A DNA stretch of 64,000 nt. Origin: Narcine bancroftii (lineage: Eukaryota). The notes under the pieces are model-generated. The model made no database searches. It saw only the letters and a list, made by a program, of their open reading frames with translations, and was not told where the DNA came from. A program made the position numbers and the translations under genes. Below, piece by piece: positions 3,190-63,355 of the stretch. Numbering within the stretch: the first letter of the stretch is position 1; the number at the start of each line of letters is the position of its first letter. Location of the stretch: positions 178,436,001 through 178,500,000 of the forward strand of contig NC_091470.1 of NCBI RefSeq assembly GCF_036971445.1, written 5' to 3'.

Positions 3190-3640
3190 AAACCCCTTTC
3201 GTGTTCGCATTGAACAGCGATGGGCGCTGCCTGTCAACAAAGGACATTCCCCGCCCGCTGTGAATGGGGCCGGACCGTTACCGCTGTCTGGCGACGGGGG
3301 GGTCCCGGCCTGCGGAGCTGGGGCAATGGTCGGGTCGAGGACCCCGGGCTCCGGGAAGGGGGTGGAGGGGGAGACTCGGGCATGGGTGGAGATTCGGACA
3401 GCGCGAAGCCGGAAAAGGAGGGGGGTGGCTCGTCCCGTTCGCCATCGCGTCGGCTCCCTCTATGAACCAGACCCCCCAACTAATTACAACCCCCCCACCC
3501 ACCCCCACTCCTCTACCCTCCCCGACCGGGCCTCAGCCCTGGCGATGTGTGTAAACAAATTGGGGCGGTAACTGATGGCGAAACTCGACTTGGACATTTT
3601 GAACGATCCGCAGCCCCCGCAGCCCCCCCCCCCCCGGGTT
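3190..3640. promoter_or_regulatory. CpG-rich non-repetitive segment, putative promoter or enhancer
   Basis: High CpG density; clustered TGTCA, ACAAAG, CATTCC, CCCCGCCC, TGAATG (3232-3266) and TGTAAACAAAT, GGGGCGG (3550-3568); no credible ORF. Confidence 0.45.
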
Positions 3641-3694
3641 CACCGACTTCTATCCTCCCTCACCTATCCTTCCCCCCTCTTCCCTCTCTCCTCC

Positions 3695-4390
3695 CTCCCT
3701 GTCTCCACCGCCCCGTCTCCCCCTTCCCTGTCTCCACCGCCCCGTCTCCCCCTTCCCTGTCTCCCCCTTCCCTGTCTCCACCGCCCCGTCTCCCCCTTCC
3801 CTGTCTCCCCCTTCCCTGTCTCCACCGCCCCGTCTCCCCCTTCCCTGTCTCCACCGCCCCGTCTCCCCCTTCCCTGTCTCCCCCTTCCCTGTCTCCACCG
3901 CCCCGTCTCCCCCTTCCCTGTCTCCACCGCCCCGTCTCCCCCTTCCCTGTCTCCACCGCCCCGTCTCCCCCTTCCCTGTCTCCACCGCCCCGTCTCCCCC
4001 TTCCCTGTCTCCACCGCCCCGTCTCCCCCTTCCCTGTCTCCACCGCCCCGTCTCCCCCTTCCCTGTCTCCACCGCCCCGTCTCCCCCTTCCCTGTCTCCA
4101 CCGCCCCGTCTCCCCCTTCCCTGTCTCCACCGCCCCGTCTCCGTTCCCTGTCTCCTCCCTCCCTGTCTCCCCTTCCCTGTTCTCTCCCTCCCTGTCTCCA
4201 CCGCCCCGTCTCCCCCTTCCCTGTTCCCTCTCTCCTCCCTCCCTGTCTCCAACCCCCGTCTCCCCTTCCCTGTTCTCTCCCTCCCACCCTCCCTGTCTCC
4301 AACCCCCGTCTCCCCTTCCCTGTTCCCTCTCTCCTCCCTCCCTGTCTCCACCGCCCCGTCTCACCCTGTTCCCCCTTGTCTCCCTCCCAC
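3695..4390. repeat. C-rich 29-bp minisatellite (CCTGTCTCCACCGCCCCGTCTCCCCCTTC)n with shorter partial units
   Basis: 29-nt periodicity read directly; explains the overlapping Pro-rich and Gly/Arg-rich ORFs. Confidence 0.92.
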
Positions 4391-5351
4391 CCTCCCTGTC
4401 TCCCCCCACCCCGCTCTCTGCCAGCCCGGAATTAAGGCGATTCGCGCTGCAGGAAAGAATTTTACCTGGAAAGGCTGCGGCAGGGAGAGGACATCAAGGA
4501 CCCAGCAGATCCTCGACAGTCCGGAGAGTGGCCGGTCCCCCAGACCCGCCCACACAGCGAGAGAGAGACGTGGCTGGTCCACCCTACCCTCCTCCTCTAC
4601 CCCCTCGGGATCTTCACAAAACATTAAAGCTGATCTCGCAATTATTAATACGTGTTCTTTTTCATTTTCTGCACAAACTGGATGCAAACCTCCATGGAGG
4701 GAACTATTCCTAATGTTATGAGGAACAAGATGAGTAATTTTGAGGAAGAGATGACCTTCTCTCACCCCTCTGTGGGCTCCCATCCTCCCTGATCCTGTAC
4801 CTGGAACCTGACCAAGTCGTTTATCAGTAACACTCAGGCATTTTAAGCCCACCACGTCCACGTGACTACGGTTGGCACCATAATAAATTAGTTAGGTTTC
4901 TAAAAAAAAATTAGACCTAATAGTCAAGGTGGAATTTGATAAAATGCATGACCTATAAATGAATTATTCTCTTCATCTGTGTGGACCCTTCGGGGATTCC
5001 CTGTGTCTGGGATTCATGTTTACAATACAGACCCCCTTGTTTAGAGGGAGGGGGTAGATTAGTAGGGAGAAAAAAAAATAATTTGTTCCCCCATTTCATT
5101 ATTAAGCCAAATAAGTAAAGGGAGACGGGGTGAACTAACATTGATGCAGTCACAAAGAAGGCTCGCCAGCAGCTGAACTTTGTGAAGTGTCTGGGGAGGT
5201 TTGGTACATCACTGAAGGCTCTCGTAAACATCCGCATGTGGACTGTGGAGAGCATTCTGGCCGATTGCATCACTGCCTGGTACGGAGGCGCCAACTCTCA
5301 GGACAGGAATAAATTCCAGAGGGTTGTGAACTCGGCCTATGACATCGCAGG

Positions 5352-6865
5352 TGTTGGGTACCTCTGCCAGACACCACGTCATGAGGTCACCCTTCCATAT
5401 ATATAACTCTGTGGGTCAGTAGCCAGATTAGTCTAATAGAAGTGAAGGATGAGAAAGTATCAGGTCCCTGAGTCTTAATTGGGTGAGGGCCAACACAACA
5501 GTGGCAACAAAGAATAAAATGAACCCAACACGTTCTCCATGCACCACTCGTGAGAAGGAAAATGACAGAAGGTAGGAAACGACTTCCTAACAACCCCAAC
5601 AAAAGGTCAAGGCGAAAGTGCGCCAAGATGGCAGAGGGAAAGTTCAACGAGGTAGAAGAGAGTTGGGAGAACTACGTCGAACAGTTTAACCACTACTGTG
5701 TAGCCCACAATATTGTGGAAGATCTGGTAAACTACAAACGTGCCCTCCTCCTCCTCAGTAGAATGGGCAGCAAAACATTCAATCTCCTTAAGACCTTGCT
5801 GGCCCCGGAGGATCCAGGGATGAAGACATTCAACGAATTATGCACAGCTCTAAGGAACAATTTAAGCACCAAACTACCAGTTATAGCAGAAAGGCAACGA
5901 TTCTATGAAAGGAGACAAGGACCAGGAGAAACAGTAAGTGAATACCTGGCATCATTGCACAAACTGGCGGAGCACTGTCATTTCGAGCAGTTTCTAAATC
6001 AGGCACTGCGAGACAGATTAATGATGGAGCAAATCGCCATGGCAAAAATTATTAGCAATAGATGAAGACATTACATTACAGATTGTATACAGGGCAGCCT
6101 GTAGCTCAGAAATGGCAGATAAAAACTTAGGGGGAGTCCTTCCTGCCAACAATGCTTCTGTTGTGAGAAATACAACTACTGACCTGAAAACTGTCTCCTC
6201 AAAAATTCTAAATACAACTGTGGATTCTGGGGTCAGCAGGGTGCTCGCACGAAATGACTGACTTCAATTACAGCCTTGGTTGGATTGTTTTTTAATCTAC
6301 AGATTGGGTTACTTTCATTCACCGCTACTACTGAAATGCCATTACATGTAAAGGAACATTTGCTCCCGGTAAAAACAAATGGAATAACTCTAAGACCTGT
6401 TAGACGAGACAGAATCAAAGTGTTTGGAAAAAGTATGGTCCAAGTACAAGTAACAGCAACCAAAAACACTCTCTCTACATCGTAGATATCCAGGGACTAG
6501 CACTCTTCGGAAGAAACTGGCTACAACATTCCCCAAGACTGGCTGTAAACTGGTTCAATACTAAATGTAAATCACACAGATACCTCCCAGCCAGAACTCG
6601 GCTGCTGACCCGACTATCTACAGGGCCAGCACAGCAAACCATGGCGAGGTAAGAGAAAGAAGGCACCCAAACGCTTTAAGGACTATGTGCCCTGGGAAAG
6701 TGTTGCGTACAAGCCAACCATCTGCTGGACACCATGATGCCCAAGTCATGACATCACCCTTCCATATATATAACCCTGTGTGTCAGTGGCCAGATTAGTC
6801 TAATAGAAGTGAAGGATGAGAAAGCATCACATCCCGAGTCTTAATTGTGTGAGGGCCAACACAAC
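5352..6865 (+). mobile_element. Internally deleted Gypsy-like LTR element (LTRs ~5352-5500 and ~6701-6865)
   Basis: Two similar direct repeats starting TGTTG; TGGCAAC PBS-like motif at 5502; gag remnant; RT and integrase core absent; degenerate TSD CAGG/CGGG. Confidence 0.8.
5628..6065 (+). pseudogene. Truncated retrotransposon gag
   Basis: ESWENYVEQF..VIAERQRFYERRQGPGETVSEYLASLHKLAEHC..ALRDRL is a typical Gypsy capsid region; early stop. Confidence 0.8.
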
Positions 6866-7210
6866 GGGTACCAGACTCCACTCCATCGAGGACGCCAACA
6901 TGAGGCGGTGTCTTAAAAAAGCAGCCTCTATCCTGAAAGACCCCACCACCCAGGCCAGGCCCTCTTCACTATGCTACCATTGGGGAAAAGGTCCAGGAGC
7001 CTGAAGACAAAACCCCAGCCACACAAGGATGGCTTCTTTCCCCCCACCCCCCCACCCCCCACCCACCATCAGATTCCCGAATATTCGGTGAACCACAGAC
7101 ACTTTCCCTTATTTTGTAAAATGTAATTTATAGCAATTTTTGCACCTGTAACAGTTTCGGAGAACAACAGATTTTGTGGCATTCTTATGTCAATAAATTC
7201 TGATTCTAAT

Positions 7211-7955
7211 TACAGAAAATGTCCAAAAATACAGATGCCACAAACCCAGACTTGGAGAAAACTCTGGACTGAAATCCAGACCAACCGAGAATCCAGACTT
7301 GGCGAAAACTCTGGACTGAAATCCAGACCACCCGAGAATCTGGACTTGGCGAAAACTCTCGACTGAAATCCAGACCACCCGAGAATCTGGACTTGGCAGA
7401 AACTCTCGACTGAAATCCAGACCACCCGAGAATCCCGACTTGGCGAAAACTCTTGACTGAAATCCAGACCACCTGAGAATCCGGACTTGGTGAAAACTCT
7501 CGACTGAAATCCAGACTACCTGAGAATCTGGACTTGGCAGAAACTCTCGACTGAAATACAGACCACCCGAGAATCCGGACTTGGCGAAAACTCTCGACTG
7601 AAATCCAGACCACCCAAGAATCTGGACTTGGCGGAAACTCTGGACTGAAATCCAGACCACCCAAAAATCCGGACTTGGCGAAAACTCTGGACTGAAATCC
7701 AGACCACCCGAGAATCCGGACTTGGCGAAAACTCTGGGCTGTTGTATGTGTAACTAAAACGCCACAGAGGCAACAAGCCATCATGTGGAAGACACAGAAA
7801 AAATAATTATTTGTGCTTTTATTCTTTGTATTTTATATGAAAAAATATCCTGTTAAACTATCAAAATGTACTTGTTTTAAAAGTGCTGCCTGAGAATCCG
7901 GTAAATCTGGACCAACCCAATCCCTGAGCAGTCCAAATATTTGGACTTCACTGTA
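7211..7955. mobile_element. Tc1/mariner (Tigger-like) non-autonomous relic carrying a minisatellite
   Basis: TA-CAG ... CTG-TA ends with degenerate TIRs (GTCCAAAAAT versus GTCCAAATAT on the reverse strand). Confidence 0.5.
7246..7738. repeat. 47-bp minisatellite, about 10 copies
   Basis: Unit GACTTGGCGAAAACTCTCGACTGAAATCCAGACCACCCGAGAATCCG recurs every 47 nt. Confidence 0.92.
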
Positions 7956-12351: not shown

Positions 12352-12589
12352 CACTCTGTCTATGTCCTAACTAACCGGGGAGCTGAGCCTGCACCAGATC
12401 AAGGGCTGGCGGGTACTGTTTGCCGCGTCTTTTCACTGCATTTACCGAGTCGAGTATTTTGGACCAATTTCTTTGGGTGAAATTTGGGGGTGGGGGTGGG
12501 GGTAGGGGGTTGACTTTTACATGGGACATATTTTTGACCACAGTAAATACCTGAGCTGTTCAAGGTGTTGGGAGCTCAAATGGGCTGAT

Positions 12590-12830
12590 AAGTCCACATT
12601 AGGGGAGTCGGGAGCTCGGATGGGCTGGGACTGGCTGGTAGGTCCACATTAGGGGAGTCAGGAGCTCAGATGGGCCCGGACCGGCTGGTAAGTCCACATT
12701 AGGGGAGTCGGAAGCTCGGATGGGCCGGGACCAGCTGGTAAGTCCACATTAGGGGAGTCAGGAACTCGGATGGGCCGGAACCGGCTGGTAAATCCACATT
12801 AGGGGAGTCGGGAACTCGGATGGGCGGCCA
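12590..12830. repeat. 50-bp minisatellite, about 5 copies
   Basis: GTCCACATTAGGGGAGTC recurs at 12592, 12642, 12692, 12742 and 12792. Confidence 0.88.
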
Positions 12831-12834
12831 TATC

Positions 12835-15092: not shown

Positions 15093-16316
15093 CTGCACAA
15101 GACAGAAAGGTGGTGGTGGAAATTACAGAGGATAATGTGTTGGATATGAAGGCGGGGGGGAGGTGGTCGGTGAGGACAAGGGAAACCCTGTGTCCGCCGT
15201 GTCTGGGGATGGAAGGGGAAAGTCGAAAAAATGAGATGAGACTGGGAGGACAGAGAGGCTGTAATAGGGAGGCTTTGCGGCTCTGGCCTTGGGGGAATTT
15301 GTGGCTGTCGGGGTTGCCTCGTGCACCTGTGATGGGCTCGTCACTTCGTTCACTCTGCTGCCAATCTCAAATTCTCTGTCTTGGGAGACAAGCTTTCTAC
15401 AGATGTGTTTTATAAACCCACAACTACCTGGACTTGCACGTCCTCACACCCAGTCACCTGTATGGTGATATGTAATTACACCACTACGTCACCAGGGGGC
15501 ATCCCAGTGACCTTGTATATAAAGTAGTCCAGAGTTGCAGTCTACCCTTCCAGGTTCGTCTTGCAGAGAGACAAGACCTCTTAGTGTACATATTAGTTTA
15601 TTAAAGCTGTCTTATACTCACACTGCTGGTGTGGTTATTGTCAGTACAATTTAACAAACTAATATTATAGCTACTAGGATGGAAGCTGCTTCTGCTCTGA
15701 CGCACATTCCCAACCACCTGGAGACTCATCCTGAGGAGGAATCCGAGGGCGACCAGCACACACGTGCATCCGAGGACAGAGACGGCAAGGGACTGCTGTA
15801 CTGGACTCGTGGTGGAATGCGGGATAGACCATAGAAGTAAGAAATGGCCAAGAGCCCTGCCTGCCCATGGGTTCGCCAGTACAGGTGCCACTGACCCTAA
15901 ACCCCGGTCCAATCAGAAAGGGGCCACTACAAGCGCGGGTGGAAGGATCTCTACAAGTTGTGCTCCCAATCGCCACGTATGTGCAGAATTCCTGACCACT
16001 CCAGAGCCAAGGAAAGCAGACTCCGCTACCGTCACTCCCCCAACAGCAGTTTCCCCAGTACCATGGAGACCTGATGCTACCGCTGGGATCCCCCCTAAAT
16101 CCGCTGCAAACGTCCCAAAGCCAGAGACTCAGCCAACAGCCCAAAGCACCCAGGTTACTCTTCCAGCAGACACAAGCCCCACAGAGGCTCTACCAGCAGC
16201 TCCCAGTACCCCAGGGTCCGCCCTTGCTACACCTAGACCCAGAGACCACGTGGAGACAAGGAACGACTCCTGGGGTGTCCCCACATTACCTAAGGGACCA
16301 GAGACTGCAGCTTAGA

Positions 16317-19300
16317 CATGTGCTGCGACCAGACAGGCTGGAGCTCGACCCCAGAAATCCTGGAGCTGGTACGCACTTCGGCCACTGGCAGAAATGCTTT
16401 CTGAATTATGTGGAGGGTGCGGAGGCATTGGATAAAGAGCTATTAATGCTGCTGTTAGTGCAGCTGGGAGACCACCCTTACTCCTTGACACAGGATGTCA
16501 GGTCCTACCAAGAGGCAATGAGCACTTTACAGAGGCATTACAGTAAGGGGCATAGTGAACTCCACTCCCGGTACAGACTCATGACCAGGTCACAACAAGT
16601 AGGGGAATCTGCCAGAGACTTTATACTCTCTCTGAAAGACCTGGCGAGAGGCTGCAATTTTAAAGCAGTATCAGCTCAGGAGTATGTGGAGGACCTTATT
16701 AGCGACAGAATTGTTGCGGGCATACGGTCCACTAAGATGAGACATTGATTGCTGGAGAAAGGAATGGTGGGGCTAGATGAGGCAGAGACTATTGCAGAAG
16801 CTTTAGAAAGCACCAGGAAAGAATTGGAGGAGTACTCACAGGAGCCTGGGGCTGGGACTGGGACAAATGTCACACTGCTGGACTCTAGCCCCACGAAAAG
16901 AAAAGTATGCTGCCTCTGTACTGACAATAACCACACCTGCAGTGCGTGTATAAGACAGCTTTAATAAACTAATATGTACACTAAGACGTCTTGTCTCTCT
17001 GCAAGACGAACCTGGAAGGCTAGACTGTAGCTCTGGATTGCTTTATATACAAGGTTACCGGGATGCCCCCTGGTGACCTAGTGGTGTAATTACATTTCAC
17101 CACAGTCTTGCAAGAATTCACAGCAGCAGCAACACACCTTGAGGGTCCCAAGTGCTTTTTCTGTGGACAAAGAAAGGACCCCAGAGCCCTCTGCCCTGCC
17201 AGAGAAAATGTCTGTTCCAACTGTGGAAAACGTGGGCATAATGCAAAAGTCTGCAGAAGCCCCAAGGCCACAGCCAAGGCCCATTCTCATGCTAAGGAGA
17301 GATGTGAAAGCTCTTCTTTCTTCACAGACATACAGAAGAAGAATGCCATGTGCAGCCAGCCATCTTGGACAAATGCTACAGAGCAGAAGACACAGTCTTC
17401 AGGAGAGGAACATGACGTCAAGTACTATCGGATGGAAGGACACGAAGGACACGCCAGTCTCGCTTCCCTATGTATGAATTGGGTGAGTCCACACAATTTA
17501 TCTGATGCCACTGTGTGCATCAAAATTAATGATGTAAAGGTAAATTGCTTAATAGATAGTGGAAGCACAGAAAGTTTTATTGACCAGGGGTTAGTCAACC
17601 GCCTTGCCCTCCCCACACGCCCGAGTGAGCACTGGATCCTGTTAGCAGCCAGCAGCCTTGCGGCTGAGGTAAAATAGTTTTGCAGGATTACTCTGGAAAT
17701 CCAGAGCACAAAATACGAAGGGTTCAAATGACTAGTACTCCCTCACCTCTGTGCCCCGGTACTATTGGGGTTAGATTTTCAGTGCCTGTTAGAAAGCACA
17801 ATGGGGCTCACCCCCCACTACGCCTTACAATGAAACAACACTGCAGCCTGTCTGTCCTGAACATAGAACCCTCTCCACTGTTCACCCACCTGACCCCAGA
17901 ATGCACACCATAAGCCACAAAGAGCAGGAGGTACAGCCCGAGGGACAGAGCCTTCATTAGGACAGAGGTCTGCAGGCTACTACAGGAGGGGGTCATAGAG
18001 CAGAGCACCAGCCCTTGGAGAGCCCAGACAGTTGTAGTAAAGTCAAGAGAAAAACTGCGCGTGATAGTGGATTACAGCCAGATAATCAACAAATTTACAC
18101 AAGTGGATGCCTACCCCCTGCCACGCATAGCAGACATGGTCAACAACATTGCGCAGAATAAGGTGTTCTCCACTTGAAGGCAGCATACCACCAACTGCCC
18201 ATTCGAAACAACGATCACATTTACACGGTATTTGAGGCAGATGGCAGGCTGTATCAATTTCTGTGACTCCCCTTCGGTGTCACCAATGGAGTGTCCCTGT
18301 TTCAGAGAGAAATGGACCGAATAGTAGATGAGTTCCAACTGAAAGTGGTGTTCCCCTACTTAGACAATGTGACAATCTGTGGCCACACTCAGGAGGATGA
18401 CATAATTTAAAACGCTTCTTCCAGGCAGCCAAGGAAAGGAAACAAACATAGAACAGGGACAAATGCATCTTCAGCACCAGGAAGTTGCCAATCATGGACT
18501 ACATAGTACAGAAAAGGGAAATCAGCCCAGACCCAGCCTGTATGCGCCCTCTCCTAGACCTCCCAGTGCCACACACACTGAAAGCACTAAAAAGATGTTT
18601 GGGACTGTTCACTTACTACACCCAATGGGTCCCCAACTACGCCAACAGGGCCCACCCACTTATAAAAGCCTCAGTTTTCCCACTGTGCCCAGCAGCCACC
18701 AGAGCATTCAGGGACATTAGGGACCATATCACTAAAGCTACCAAGCGGTCCATAGATGAGTCGATCCCGTTTCAAGTAGAAATGGATGCATCCGATGTGG
18801 CTCTGGCAGCCACCCTAAACCAAGATGAACGACTGGTGGCCTTTTTCTTGCAAACCCTACAGGGGTCAGACGTAAGACACTCAGCAGTAGAGAAGGAGGC
18901 CCTAGCCATTGTGGAAGCAGTAAGGCACTGGCGACATTATCTGGCGTGCAAACACTTCACCCTCGTCATGGACCAACGGTCTGTCGCTTTTATGTTCGAT
19001 AACCAGAACAGAGGGAGAATTAAGAACGACAAAATCCTGCGCTGGTGGATAGAATTGTCTACATTTAACTACGACATTCTATACCACCCTGGGAGACTCA
19101 ACGAGCCCCTGGACGCGCTGTCCAGAGGCACTTGTGCCATCCTTAACCCCATGTCCCAGTTGCAGAACGTGCACAACGAGCTGGGACACCCAGTGGTCGC
19201 TAGACTGTTTCACTTCATTAAAACTCAAAACCTCCCATTTTCGGTCGAGGAAGTGAGGTCAGTGAACAAGAGCTGCCTCATCTGTGCAGAATGCAAACCG

Positions 19301-20359
19301 CAATTTTACCGGCCAAACAAAGCCACCCTGATAAAAGCTACCAAACCTTTTGAGCGCCTCAGCCTCGATTTTAAAGGCCCGCTCCTGTCCAATAATAGAA
19401 ATGTCTATTTCCTAAACGTAATCGATGAATATTCCCATTTCCCCATCGCAATCCCGTGTTCTGATGTATCAGCAGCCACTGTTATAAAATGCCTCCAACC
19501 CATCTTCAGCATATTTGGGTACCTGAACTACATACACACAGACAGGGGGGTTGCATTCATGAGCACAGAAGTACAGCAGTACCTGCACGAGAGAGGGATT
19601 GCTACCAGCCGCACTACAAGTTACAATCCCAGGGGGAATGGACAAGTCGAAAGGGAAAATGCCACTATCTGGAAAACAGTCCTCTTGACCTTAAAAGCAA
19701 AAGACCTGCCTGTTACTAGATGGCAAGAAGTGTTGCCAGAAGCCCTACACTCTATATGTTCTTTGTTGTGTACTGCCACTAACATGATACCACATGACTG
19801 TATCTTTTCTTTCACAAGGAAACCCACCTCGGGCACATTGCTGCCTAAATGGATGATGACACCGGGACCTGTTCTCCTCCGGAAACACTGCAGACCCCAC
19901 AAAGCGGACCTGCTGGTGGTTCAAGTGGAGTTGAGGCACGCGAACCCTCAGTATGCCTTCGTCACATTCCCATGGAAAAGAAGACTCGGTGACCACCAGG
20001 GATCTCACGCCAGCCGGATGTGTGAACAACGCGGAGGAAATACAGATGTCTACGATTCAACAAGGAGCGCAGCAGCCGTCACTGGAACAGTCGTCCATCG
20101 AGTCACCCCAGAGGACTCCACCACCCACTCCGGAAATCAGGATCCTGGGTACACCCGCCCCACAAAATATCACCACCCTAGACGATGGCAGGACCTAATC
20201 CCATACAAGAGGATCCCCAGCCCACACGGCCATCTAGTACTTCCCACTCCCACACCTCCACCAAGAAAGGCCGAAAGGCAGACTGCACTCTCCCTCCATA
20301 TACCACTACCGAGGAGGTCCAGAAGGCAATGGAAACCACAAAAAATTTTGGACTTATGA
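16317..20359 (+). pseudogene. Gypsy gag-pol remnants
   Basis: Gag VLRPDRLELDP; knuckle CSNCGKRGHNAKVC; protease LIDSGS; RT YLDN; RNase H DASD..EKEALA; integrase DFKGP/DRG/GNGQVER in the open 18485-20359 segment; multiple stops and frameshifts. Confidence 0.92.
16917..17104 (-). mobile_element. Solo LTR of the same family, inserted antisense in the Gypsy gag
   Basis: Reverse complement matches 15461-15648; TG..CA ends; degenerate TSD GCCTC/GTCTT. Confidence 0.92.
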
Positions 20360-21844
20360 ACTTACAAACAAGGGAAGGAGAACAGGGGGGGGGATAACAA
20401 TTTTTTAAGGGAGGTGAATGCGGTGATATGTAATTACACCACTAGGTCACCAGGGGTCACCCCAGTGACCTTGTCTATAAAGCAGTCCAGAGCTACAGTC
20501 TAGCCTTCCAGGTCTGTCTTGCAGAGACAAGACCTCTTAGTGTACATATTAGTTTATTAAAGCTGTCTTATACTCGCACTGCTGGTGTAGTTATTGTCAG
20601 TACAACCTGCAAGGATTCCATCCCCTTCTCTCAAATTCCCCGACTCCGCCGCATCTGTTCCCAAGATGGGGTCTTCCGGAAGGTCCTCCATCTTCCACAA
20701 ACATGGCTTCCCCTCCACCACCATCAGCTCAGCCCTCACCCACATCTCCACCATTTCCCACTCATCTACCCTTGCTCTTCCGCACCCCCCAGACATAAGG
20801 ACAGGATTCCCCTTGTCCTCACTTACCACCCCACCAGCCTCCACATCCAACACATCCTCCTCCAGAATTTCTGGCACTTACAACAGGATCCCACCACCAG
20901 ATACATCTTCCCCTCTCCGACTTCTGTAGGGACTCTCCCTCCATCATTTCCTTGCCCACTCATCCCTGCCCACCAATTGCCCCCTTGGCACCTTCCCCTG
21001 TGACCACTAGGTGCCACTCTTGCGCCCACACCTCCTGCCCCACCAACGTTCGGGGTCCCAAACAGCCCGTCCAAGTGAAGCAACACTTCCCTTGTGTGTC
21101 TGCGGGAGTCATCTACTGCGTCTGGTGATCTCGTTATGGCCCCCTCTACGTCGGGACTGGGAAATCGTTTCGCTGAGCACCTTCACTCTATCTGCATCAG
21201 TGACGGGGATCTCCCAGGGCCCAACCACTCAATTCTGCACCCCCACTCGCAGGCCGATATTTCTGTCCATAGAAATTGGAGGGGCAACACCTTATTTTCC
21301 GGATGGGTCCCTCCCCAAACGGACAGCATTAACATCAACTTCTCCGCTTTCTGCCAGCCCACTCCCCATTCCCCATCCCTCCATCTCCTTCCCTCCCCAT
21401 TCACAGAGTTGTCCCCCCTCCTCCTGTTCGCTGCTGTGCCCTCCCTCCCTTATCCACCTATTACCCCCTCCCCATGGGACTGTGCTCCTCCCCTAAACCC
21501 CCCCCCCTCACCATTTTGTTCAGATGTCTGCTGATATCTTGCTTGTACCTTGATGGAACTAAAGAACAGAAATAATCCCCTTGGCCCTTCTAGTCTGTGC
21601 TGAAATCGGGCGCCTGCCTAAATTTTGGTTGTACCTTGATGAAGGCCTCAGGCCTGAAACGTCGGTGATTTATCATTACCTCCTGTGGATGCTGCGAGAC
21701 CAGTCGAGTTCCTACAGCATTTCTGTGTTTTTACTACAGTCACAGCATCTGCAGACTGTCGTGTTTCACTTCCAAACTTTGCATGGTTCATTTCCTAATA
21801 AGTCAGCCTTTTTTTTTCTGGCTCAGACAGCTCGCCAGTGATAA

Positions 21845-52962: not shown

Positions 52963-53162
52963 NNNNNNNNNNNNNNNNNNNNNNNNNNNNNNNNNNNNNN
53001 NNNNNNNNNNNNNNNNNNNNNNNNNNNNNNNNNNNNNNNNNNNNNNNNNNNNNNNNNNNNNNNNNNNNNNNNNNNNNNNNNNNNNNNNNNNNNNNNNNNN
53101 NNNNNNNNNNNNNNNNNNNNNNNNNNNNNNNNNNNNNNNNNNNNNNNNNNNNNNNNNNNNNN
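52963..53162. other. Assembly gap (200 N)
   Basis: Run of N. Confidence 1.
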
Positions 53163-58209: not shown

Positions 58210-58395
58210 TGTGGTGAGATGTAATTACACCACTACGTCACCAGGGGTCATCCCAGTTACCTTGTCTATAAAGCAGTCCAGAGCTACAGTCTGGCCTTCC
58301 AGGTCCGTCTTGCAGAAACAAGACCTCTTAGTGCACATATTAGTTTATTTAAGCTGTCTTATACTAGCACTGCTGGTGTAGTTATTGTCAGTACA
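58210..58395 (+). mobile_element. Solo LTR of the 15461-20604 Gypsy family
   Basis: Matches the LTR end to end; TG..CA; perfect TSD GTCTG. Confidence 0.95.
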
Positions 58396-63163: not shown

Positions 63164-63355
63164 NNNNNNNNNNNNNNNNNNNNNNNNNNNNNNNNNNNNN
63201 NNNNNNNNNNNNNNNNNNNNNNNNNNNNNNNNNNNNNNNNNNNNNNNNNNNNNNNNNNNNNNNNNNNNNNNNNNNNNNNNNNNNNNNNNNNNNNNNNNNN
63301 NNNNNNNNNNNNNNNNNNNNNNNNNNNNNNNNNNNNNNNNNNNNNNNNNNNNNNN
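63164..63355. other. Assembly gap (192 N)
   Basis: Run of N. Confidence 1.

Follow-up and report, generated by a model that had tools for sequence, protein, structure and literature searches.

Anatomy of the element

We analysed a 64,000-nt stretch of Narcine bancroftii contig NC_091470.1 (forward-strand positions 178,436,001 to 178,500,000; hereafter the window, in whose own numbering all coordinates are given, on the plus strand unless stated otherwise). It carries, at 15461-20604, a decayed Ty3/gypsy element in which the place of the primer binding site (PBS) is complementary to the element's own long terminal repeat (LTR). The two LTRs, of 188 and 186 nt, are bounded by a 5-bp target-site duplication ACCTG, whose left copy lies at 15456-15460 and whose matching right copy lies at 20605-20609. 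Their bounds were set by direct repeats, by alignment with the flanks and by comparison with two solo LTRs of the same family in the window, one of which (58210-58395, with target duplication GTCTG) defines the intact termini TGTGG...GTACA. The 5' LTR (15461-15648) has the termini of the solo LTRs, except that in this copy it starts with TA, a decayed TG; it ends in ACA. The 3' LTR (20419-20604) shows ~92% identity to it and adjoins a polypurine tract, AAGGGAGGTGAA, at 20407-20418, an arrangement also found in relatives.

The coding region between the LTRs still runs in the order gag with a CCHC motif, protease, reverse transcriptase (RT), RNase H and integrase, although stops, frameshifts and a nested solo LTR interrupt it. 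Three-frame translation and Pfam matches (Asp_protease_2 / Peptidase_A2B) delimit a decayed gag and protease region at 15679-17677, with the gag ATG at 15679, a CCHC knuckle near 17200, the protease at ~17507-17648 and several stops and frameshifts. The solo LTR nested in this region (16917-17104, minus strand) belongs to the same family, with 93% identity to the 5' LTR, and its flanks, GCCTC and GTCTT, agree at only 3 of 5 positions. Downstream, translation and comparison with relatives identified an RT remnant split over frames (17890-18470) with the catalytic motif YLDN, followed by an open reading frame (ORF) of 624 aa for RNase H and integrase (18485-20359; Pfam RT_RNaseH and rve). The TG..CA LTR ends, the short target-site duplication and the order protease, RT, RNase H, integrase are those of Ty3/gypsy elements (Metaviridae), and the best solved-structure match of a full-length relative (P0005) was Ty3 Gag-Pol (7q5b, E 2.7e-59). 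With the LTR pair, the target duplication, the polypurine tract and the ordered gag-pol remains all present, these features mark the element as an old copy that integrase brought in by its usual route.

The PBS position is complementary to the LTR

No TGG occurs between the end of the 5' LTR (..GTACA, 15648) and the gag ATG; the LTR is followed by a single A and then by TTTAACAAACTAATAT, which occupies 15650-15665 and which we call the PBS arm. Scans of the window with ARAGORN and Rfam found no tRNA gene and no Rfam family. The PBS arm is the reverse complement, at 15 of 16 positions, of a segment inside the 5' LTR, ATATTAGTTTATTAAA at 15590-15605 (the LTR arm, a candidate self-primer), whose last six bases form the poly(A)-like hexamer ATTAAA (15600-15605). 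A spacer of 43 nt, presumably the end of the repeat region R together with the unique region U5, separates the two arms (15606-15648) and forms an inner CACAC/GUGUG hairpin in the predicted fold, whose energy is -21.4 kcal/mol with a z of -3.2. Since 15605 pairs with 15650, extension of a 3'-OH at 15605 would run over 15649 into U5.

These features had been claimed in an earlier note on this DNA. The LTR end at 15648 was confirmed by the LTR alignment, the ACCTG duplication and the contigs of other copies, the lack of a TGG-type PBS by the sequence that follows it, and the complementarity, with ATTAAA inside it, by the match count and by shuffling; the LTR strand of the duplex does point with its 3' end at U5, as had been described.

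We also looked at other copies of the family by aligning contigs (assembled, not raw reads) of four public sequencing runs to 15380-16900. Two are DNA runs from two organisms (X1 and X7) and two are guessed to be RNA (X5 and X6). The family proved very abundant, with LTR depth far exceeding internal depth in the run contigs, and therefore many solo LTRs must exist. Contigs of other copies diverge from the window at 15463 and at 15648, thus confirming the LTR ends. At 15655, where the window has C, essentially all other copies in the four runs have T (in X1, 55683 of 55698 by depth, in 67 contigs; in X7, 622 of 622). The pairing is therefore 16/16 in those copies, and the single mismatch is a private change that reflects decay of the copy in the window. 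The earlier note had stated that a complementarity unique to this copy would speak against self-priming; it is not unique.

Relatives retain the pairing by compensatory change

The RNase H-integrase ORF matches elasmobranch proteins at 57-67% identity (Scyliorhinus, Hypanus, Mobula and Narcine itself) and many proteins of marine invertebrates and metagenomes at ~50%. By protein alignment, we collected 80 metagenome loci of relatives, and the same layout was present wherever the 5' LTR junction was present; a scan of viral contigs yielded none. The LTR arm of the relatives is 13-19 nt long, is placed 36-68 nt ahead of the LTR end, ends in TTAAA or AATAAA (in RNA, AUUAAA, GUUAAA, UUUAAA or AAUAAA) and is followed by RCC; the PBS arm, complementary to it, starts 1-2 nt past the LTR end (..ACA A TTTAA..), and the gag ATG comes ~0-25 nt after it. 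Scanning 732 kb, both strands included, for this pattern recovered the layout in 27 loci and in the window, with only one unrelated match, and RNase H-integrase identity in those 27 loci is 39-63%. The arms pair over their full length in some relatives, at 19 of 19 positions in locus L005 and at 18 of 18 in L022. Locus L005 has identical LTRs and one intact ORF of 1213 aa, whose ATG overlaps the end of the PBS arm. As the gag ATG lies at or just past the PBS arm in young intact relatives, there is no room for another PBS. The earlier note had also named a normal tRNA PBS in other full-length copies as evidence against its proposal; the loci with a 5' LTR junction have the self-complementary layout at that place.

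The letters of the arms change from family to family. Thus, one family has the LTR and PBS arms CAAGTTTATTAAA/TTTAATAAACTTG and another has CAAGTTGATTAAA/TTTAATCAACTTG, and further family-specific pairs are TGATTCTAAGCTGTTAAAA/TTTTAACAGCTTAGAATCA and ATTATGTTGCTGATTAAA/TTTAATCAGCAACATAAT; where the LTR arm reads TTTAGCTAGTTAAA in one family and TTTAGTTAGTTAAA in another, the PBS arm is altered to match. A single host RNA serving as primer for all families is excluded, because the PBS arms differ between families.

Covariation was measured on 16 aligned families, namely that of the window and 15 marine metagenome relatives. When the arms were anchored on the LTR junction, the variable positions 6-13 were paired at 7.5 of 8 within families and at 4.6 of 8 across families, and none of 20000 permutations equalled this difference. 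A MAFFT alignment of the same families gave 89% of cells paired, compared with 68.5% in shuffles (0/500), and both sides were changed in 13 of the 16 pairs; slid controls gave 26-53%. RNAalifold, without any constraint, predicted a 13-bp helix in which 10 pairs show compensatory change, and folds of single sequences close the arm duplex with z from -2.1 to -7.5. Pairing is nearly invariant over 13 bp and declines at positions 14-16, and the pairs are almost entirely Watson-Crick, with very few G-U intermediates. The earlier note had proposed comparing LTR-to-PBS complementarity among relatives for compensatory change as a check of self-priming, and in 16 families the outcome is positive. Its central proposal, an element with no tRNA PBS whose PBS position pairs with its own LTR as a candidate self-priming system, is thus supported by the relatives, which retain the pairing with compensatory change.

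These data bear directly on whether the complementarity could be a matter of chance in AT-rich sequence. The arms are indeed AT-rich, and when the 30 bases following the LTR were shuffled, 3 of 2000 shuffles attained the score of 15/16. However, the same architecture recurs with different letters in 16 families, no permutation out of 20000 reproduces it and other copies pair perfectly. We therefore reject chance, to which we assign next to no probability.

The same evidence allowed us to weigh whether the duplex could be a regulatory RNA structure only, acting in masking of the 5' poly(A) signal, in packaging, in dimerisation or in control of gag translation, with priming left to a tRNA fragment or another small RNA. 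Such a role would suit an LTR arm that invariably ends in a poly(A)-like hexamer, and a stem that surrounds U5 shortly before the gag ATG. HIV-1, for instance, restrains its 5' poly(A) signal with a hairpin. On the other hand, the second arm sits in every family at the obligatory position of a PBS, 1-2 nt past the LTR end, and no other conserved candidate site is found ahead of the gag ATG, while the variation of the arms between families leaves no place for a shared host primer. Moreover, near-pure Watson-Crick pairs suit templated rewriting better than slow compensatory selection, and the regulatory and priming functions are not mutually exclusive. We consequently consider a purely regulatory duplex improbable.

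A proposed self-priming mechanism

Taken together, these results make it likely, in our judgement, that the element is an old broken copy of an abundant Ty3/gypsy family without chromodomain whose minus-strand DNA was primed from its own RNA and not from a tRNA. The LTR segment 15590-15605 of the genomic RNA would fold over ~44 nt and pair with 15650-15665; the element's RNase H would then cut directly behind the ...UUAAA of the LTR arm, as shown for Tf1, and DNA synthesis would proceed from the new 3'-OH at 15605 through 15649 and U5. The resulting short product would transfer to the 3' R, where synthesis would continue. The plus strand would copy the RNA primer, just as tRNA primers are copied elsewhere, so that the PBS would be rewritten from the LTR arm; such rewriting would explain the clean Watson-Crick covariation with few G-U pairs. 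From the layout we infer the cleavage, the strand transfer, the rewriting of the PBS and the masking of the poly(A) signal, the last of these because the same duplex probably masks the hexamer in its 5' copy only. The earlier note had suggested that the stem hides the signal only in the 5' LTR: the association of the arm with the signal stands, as a poly(A)-like hexamer closes the LTR arm in every case, and the masking would be a consequence of the fold.

The primer might also be supplied other than by folding back of the 5' copy: its source could be the copy of the arm in the 3' LTR, the other packaged RNA molecule (acting in trans) or the 3' end of an RNA cleaved behind the hexamer. The arm does recur unchanged in the 3' LTR (20546-20561), pairing in cis and in trans would look alike in such data, and the 3' end of R had been offered as an option in the earlier note. 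That last option is unlikely, as the hexamer forms the extreme 3' end of the arm, with no signal upstream of it; poly(A) cleavage directly at the end of its own hexamer would be contrary to how these signals work. A poly(A)-tailed 3' end was rejected as primer on the position of the hexamer and also because the sequence upstream of the PBS arm (..ACAA) offers a tail nothing to pair with. The short and constant distance between the arms (36-68 nt) favours an intramolecular fold, and we give little credence to this group of alternatives as a whole, preferring priming by the folded-back 5' LTR arm.

Where transcription starts decides whether such a primer would be internal or would be the 5' end of the RNA. 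A TATA-like box, TATATAAAG, is present at 15516-15524 by direct reading, as the earlier note had indicated (at 15516), and is a candidate promoter element; its TATAAAG is retained in the other three LTR copies of the window. Lying 72 nt upstream of the arm, this conserved TATAAAG points to a start near 15545-15550, which would make the primer internal; the earlier note had likewise predicted a start ~40 nt upstream of the paired segment. A TATA box at a constant distance from the arm was not found across the relatives, and TATA spacing was dropped as a predictor of the start, being inconsistent among them. One relative, L072, is represented by a contig (OFEQ01010153.1) that begins exactly at the first base of its 13-nt LTR arm, which could be a coincidence, an assembly break or the end of a molecule. 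The constant 13-bp helix and this contig start weakly favour a transcription start at the arm, as in Tf1; the contig set of L072 looks like DNA, which makes the second of these hints weak.

A more specific form of the proposal would make this a distinct kind of self-priming, in which an internal segment of R, and not the capped 5' end, serves as primer and is cut precisely after the poly(A) hexamer. The same duplex would serve as primer-PBS helix and as 5' poly(A) switch, the PBS would be rewritten in each cycle, and the system would have arisen independently of the chromoviruses within a Mag C-like clade in which, for example, Steamer uses tRNA-Leu. We put this forward tentatively, as a possibility that is less probable than its opposite.

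One contig of run X6 could be a trace of the priming reaction. In it, plus-strand 15605 is linked to 15649 of the opposite strand, with 61 nt fitting on the shorter side and a depth of 19.7, and this is the sequence expected of a primer joined to its strong-stop product; the junction is absent from the deeper DNA run X1. We take it as a hint only.

Several observations weigh against self-priming in the form described. The snap-back junction is known from one contig only, in a run that is guessed to be RNA, and a cDNA artefact or a genomic rearrangement could have produced it. A subfamily (L004, L007, L043 and others) spreads with a shared mismatch at arm position 13-14, and therefore either the PBS is not always rewritten over its full length or the primer is only ~13 nt long. 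A hairpin beside the presumed cut site (RCCUA..UAGGY) is clear in only some families, about 7, and a crude anchored-stem test gave 4.1 bp compared with 4.4 bp in shuffles, with no excess; we do not count it as conserved. The TATA-like box, 72 nt upstream of the arm, is at odds with a Tf1-style start at the first base of the arm. Finally, the case for priming and for cleavage after 15605 is indirect, being drawn from sequence and assembled contigs.

Comparison with known self-priming elements

Self-priming has been described for Tf1/sushi elements, for plant Tcn1 and for the plant copia lineage TAR (PMC6317226), and for Skipper of Dictyostelium it is an open question (PMC5006619). Like Tf1 and Tf2 of Schizosaccharomyces pombe and the other Tf1/sushi elements (Maggy, Skippy, Cft-1 and sushi-ichi), the element of the window has no tRNA PBS. 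As in those elements, the bases following the LTR pair, across U5, with RNA derived from its own LTR, so that the 3' end can be extended into U5 (PMC6317226, PMC5006619, PMC5445492). Thus, a PBS complementary to the element's own LTR RNA, one mark of the Tf1/sushi group, is present, whereas another mark, the chromodomain, is absent from this lineage. A search for PF00385 detected none in the window ORF, and none in its last 170 aa at E<=1, nor was any found in the 120 listed relatives or in 4 full-length ones; the earlier note's remark that no chromodomain is visible therefore holds for the window copy and for all relatives checked. The LTRs are also much shorter, ~185 nt compared with ~570 nt in the Sushi LTR model (PMC3601003).

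The priming region differs as well. The Tf1 primer is 11 nt long, whereas the duplex conserved here has 13 bp (up to 19). A poly(A)-like hexamer closes the primer arm, unlike in Tf1/sushi elements. In Tf1 the arm consists of the first transcribed bases; the arm here, 72 nt downstream of the TATA-like box, may likewise begin the transcript or may lie inside R. The plant Tcn1-clade chromoviruses and the Ty1/copia TAR elements (Houba and Osr-1) are further predicted self-primers beyond fungal and vertebrate Tf1/sushi (PMC6317226), and the trait is therefore scattered; these differ from the present lineage in their plant hosts and their phylogenetic position, Tcn1 having a chromodomain and TAR being of the copia type.

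The lineage is probably Mag C-clade-like. We prefer this placement to Tf1/sushi because of the missing chromodomain, the LTRs of ~185 nt and termini resembling the published Mag C motif. The LTR of 188 nt with termini TGTGGTGA..CAGTACA falls within the Mag C description (~150-220 nt, TGTNATRT..AYANAACA; PMC3601003 Table 3), and relatives have TGATGTGG..CATAACA and TGTTGTGC..CTACAACA. Like the Mag C-clade (SURL, Steamer and Steamer-like elements), it has short LTRs (153-219 nt in Steamers) with TGT..ACA-type ends, a size of 4-5 kb, a single or fused gag-pol and no chromodomain, and it occurs in marine invertebrates and fishes (PMC8905726, PMC6238403, PMC3601003). This placement draws on the features of the LTRs and on the range of hosts rather than on a tree. 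Unlike the present lineage, the Steamer family has an ordinary tRNA-Leu PBS, TGGTGTCAGAAG (PMC8905726), for which we found no match in the window element or in any of the 80 loci. If the lineage belongs to the C-clade, the clade contains both primer types. A Steamer-like element of Mytilus chilensis, MchSLE1 (185-nt LTRs, 4758 bp), has been annotated with an unusual 'putative PBS for Asn(AAC) tRNA' (PMC11046912), and LTR complementarity is possible there.

The best reading is therefore a Tf1-like self-priming in a lineage without chromodomain, that is, a known mechanism in a lineage and with a layout not described in the literature searched. There, Ty3/gypsy self-priming is described only for chromoviruses (Tf1/sushi and Tcn1), and we found no paper linking it with SURL, the C-clade or Jule, in a search of incomplete coverage that makes an earlier description possible. 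Self-priming appears to be the rule in a large animal lineage without chromodomain, from rays to marine invertebrates, young intact copies included, and this bears on whether hairpin priming is ancestral or has arisen repeatedly. It would also account for the failed or odd PBS calls that automatic tRNA matching produces in such elements. The covarying primer and PBS pairs form a natural series for studying how RT and RNase H choose their primer, and because the primer includes the poly(A) hexamer, priming and 3'-end control may be linked.

Additional observations

The catalytic box of the RT reads Y[LVI]DN, not YxDD, in 68 of the 78 relatives that span the motif, young and apparently intact copies included; in the window, YLDN is at 18351-18362. 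YVDN has been reported for the Cer7-12 elements of C. elegans, where the tolerance of Asn is an open question (PMC554778).

Some contigs of relatives have an unusual order. Four of them (L019, L022, L025 and L037) are circularly permuted, with the LTR, the PBS arm and the start of gag downstream of integrase and with a single LTR, and the contig of L022 starts and finishes in the same RT sequence. These could be assembly collapses of two LTRs, tandem copies or one-LTR circles. In L022, an 18-nt sequence, ACATAATCGTTCGTGTTG, is also directly repeated, occurring upstream of the arm within the LTR (~2165-2185) and again directly after the PBS arm (~2314-2332).

Two further joints appeared among the contigs of the four runs. 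Position 15649 is joined back to 15550 in contigs of both DNA runs (X1 and X7, both organisms) and of X6, as if, in a subfamily or a set of copies, the final 100 nt of the LTR had been duplicated in tandem. Position 15463 is joined to 15676, 3 nt before the gag ATG, on opposite strands in contigs of X5 and X6, not in those of the DNA runs; a polymorphic insertion of an inverted solo LTR or a by-product of replication could account for it.

Elsewhere in the window, the earlier note had placed a second Gypsy element with a TGGC PBS at 5352, and in 5000-5480 neither an LTR end nor a PBS was obvious to us. The window contains runs of N at 52963-53162 and 63164-63355. Upstream of the element there are three arrays of tandem repeats, at 3580-4250, 7149-7806 and 12583-12832, with periods of ~14.5, 47 and 50 nt.
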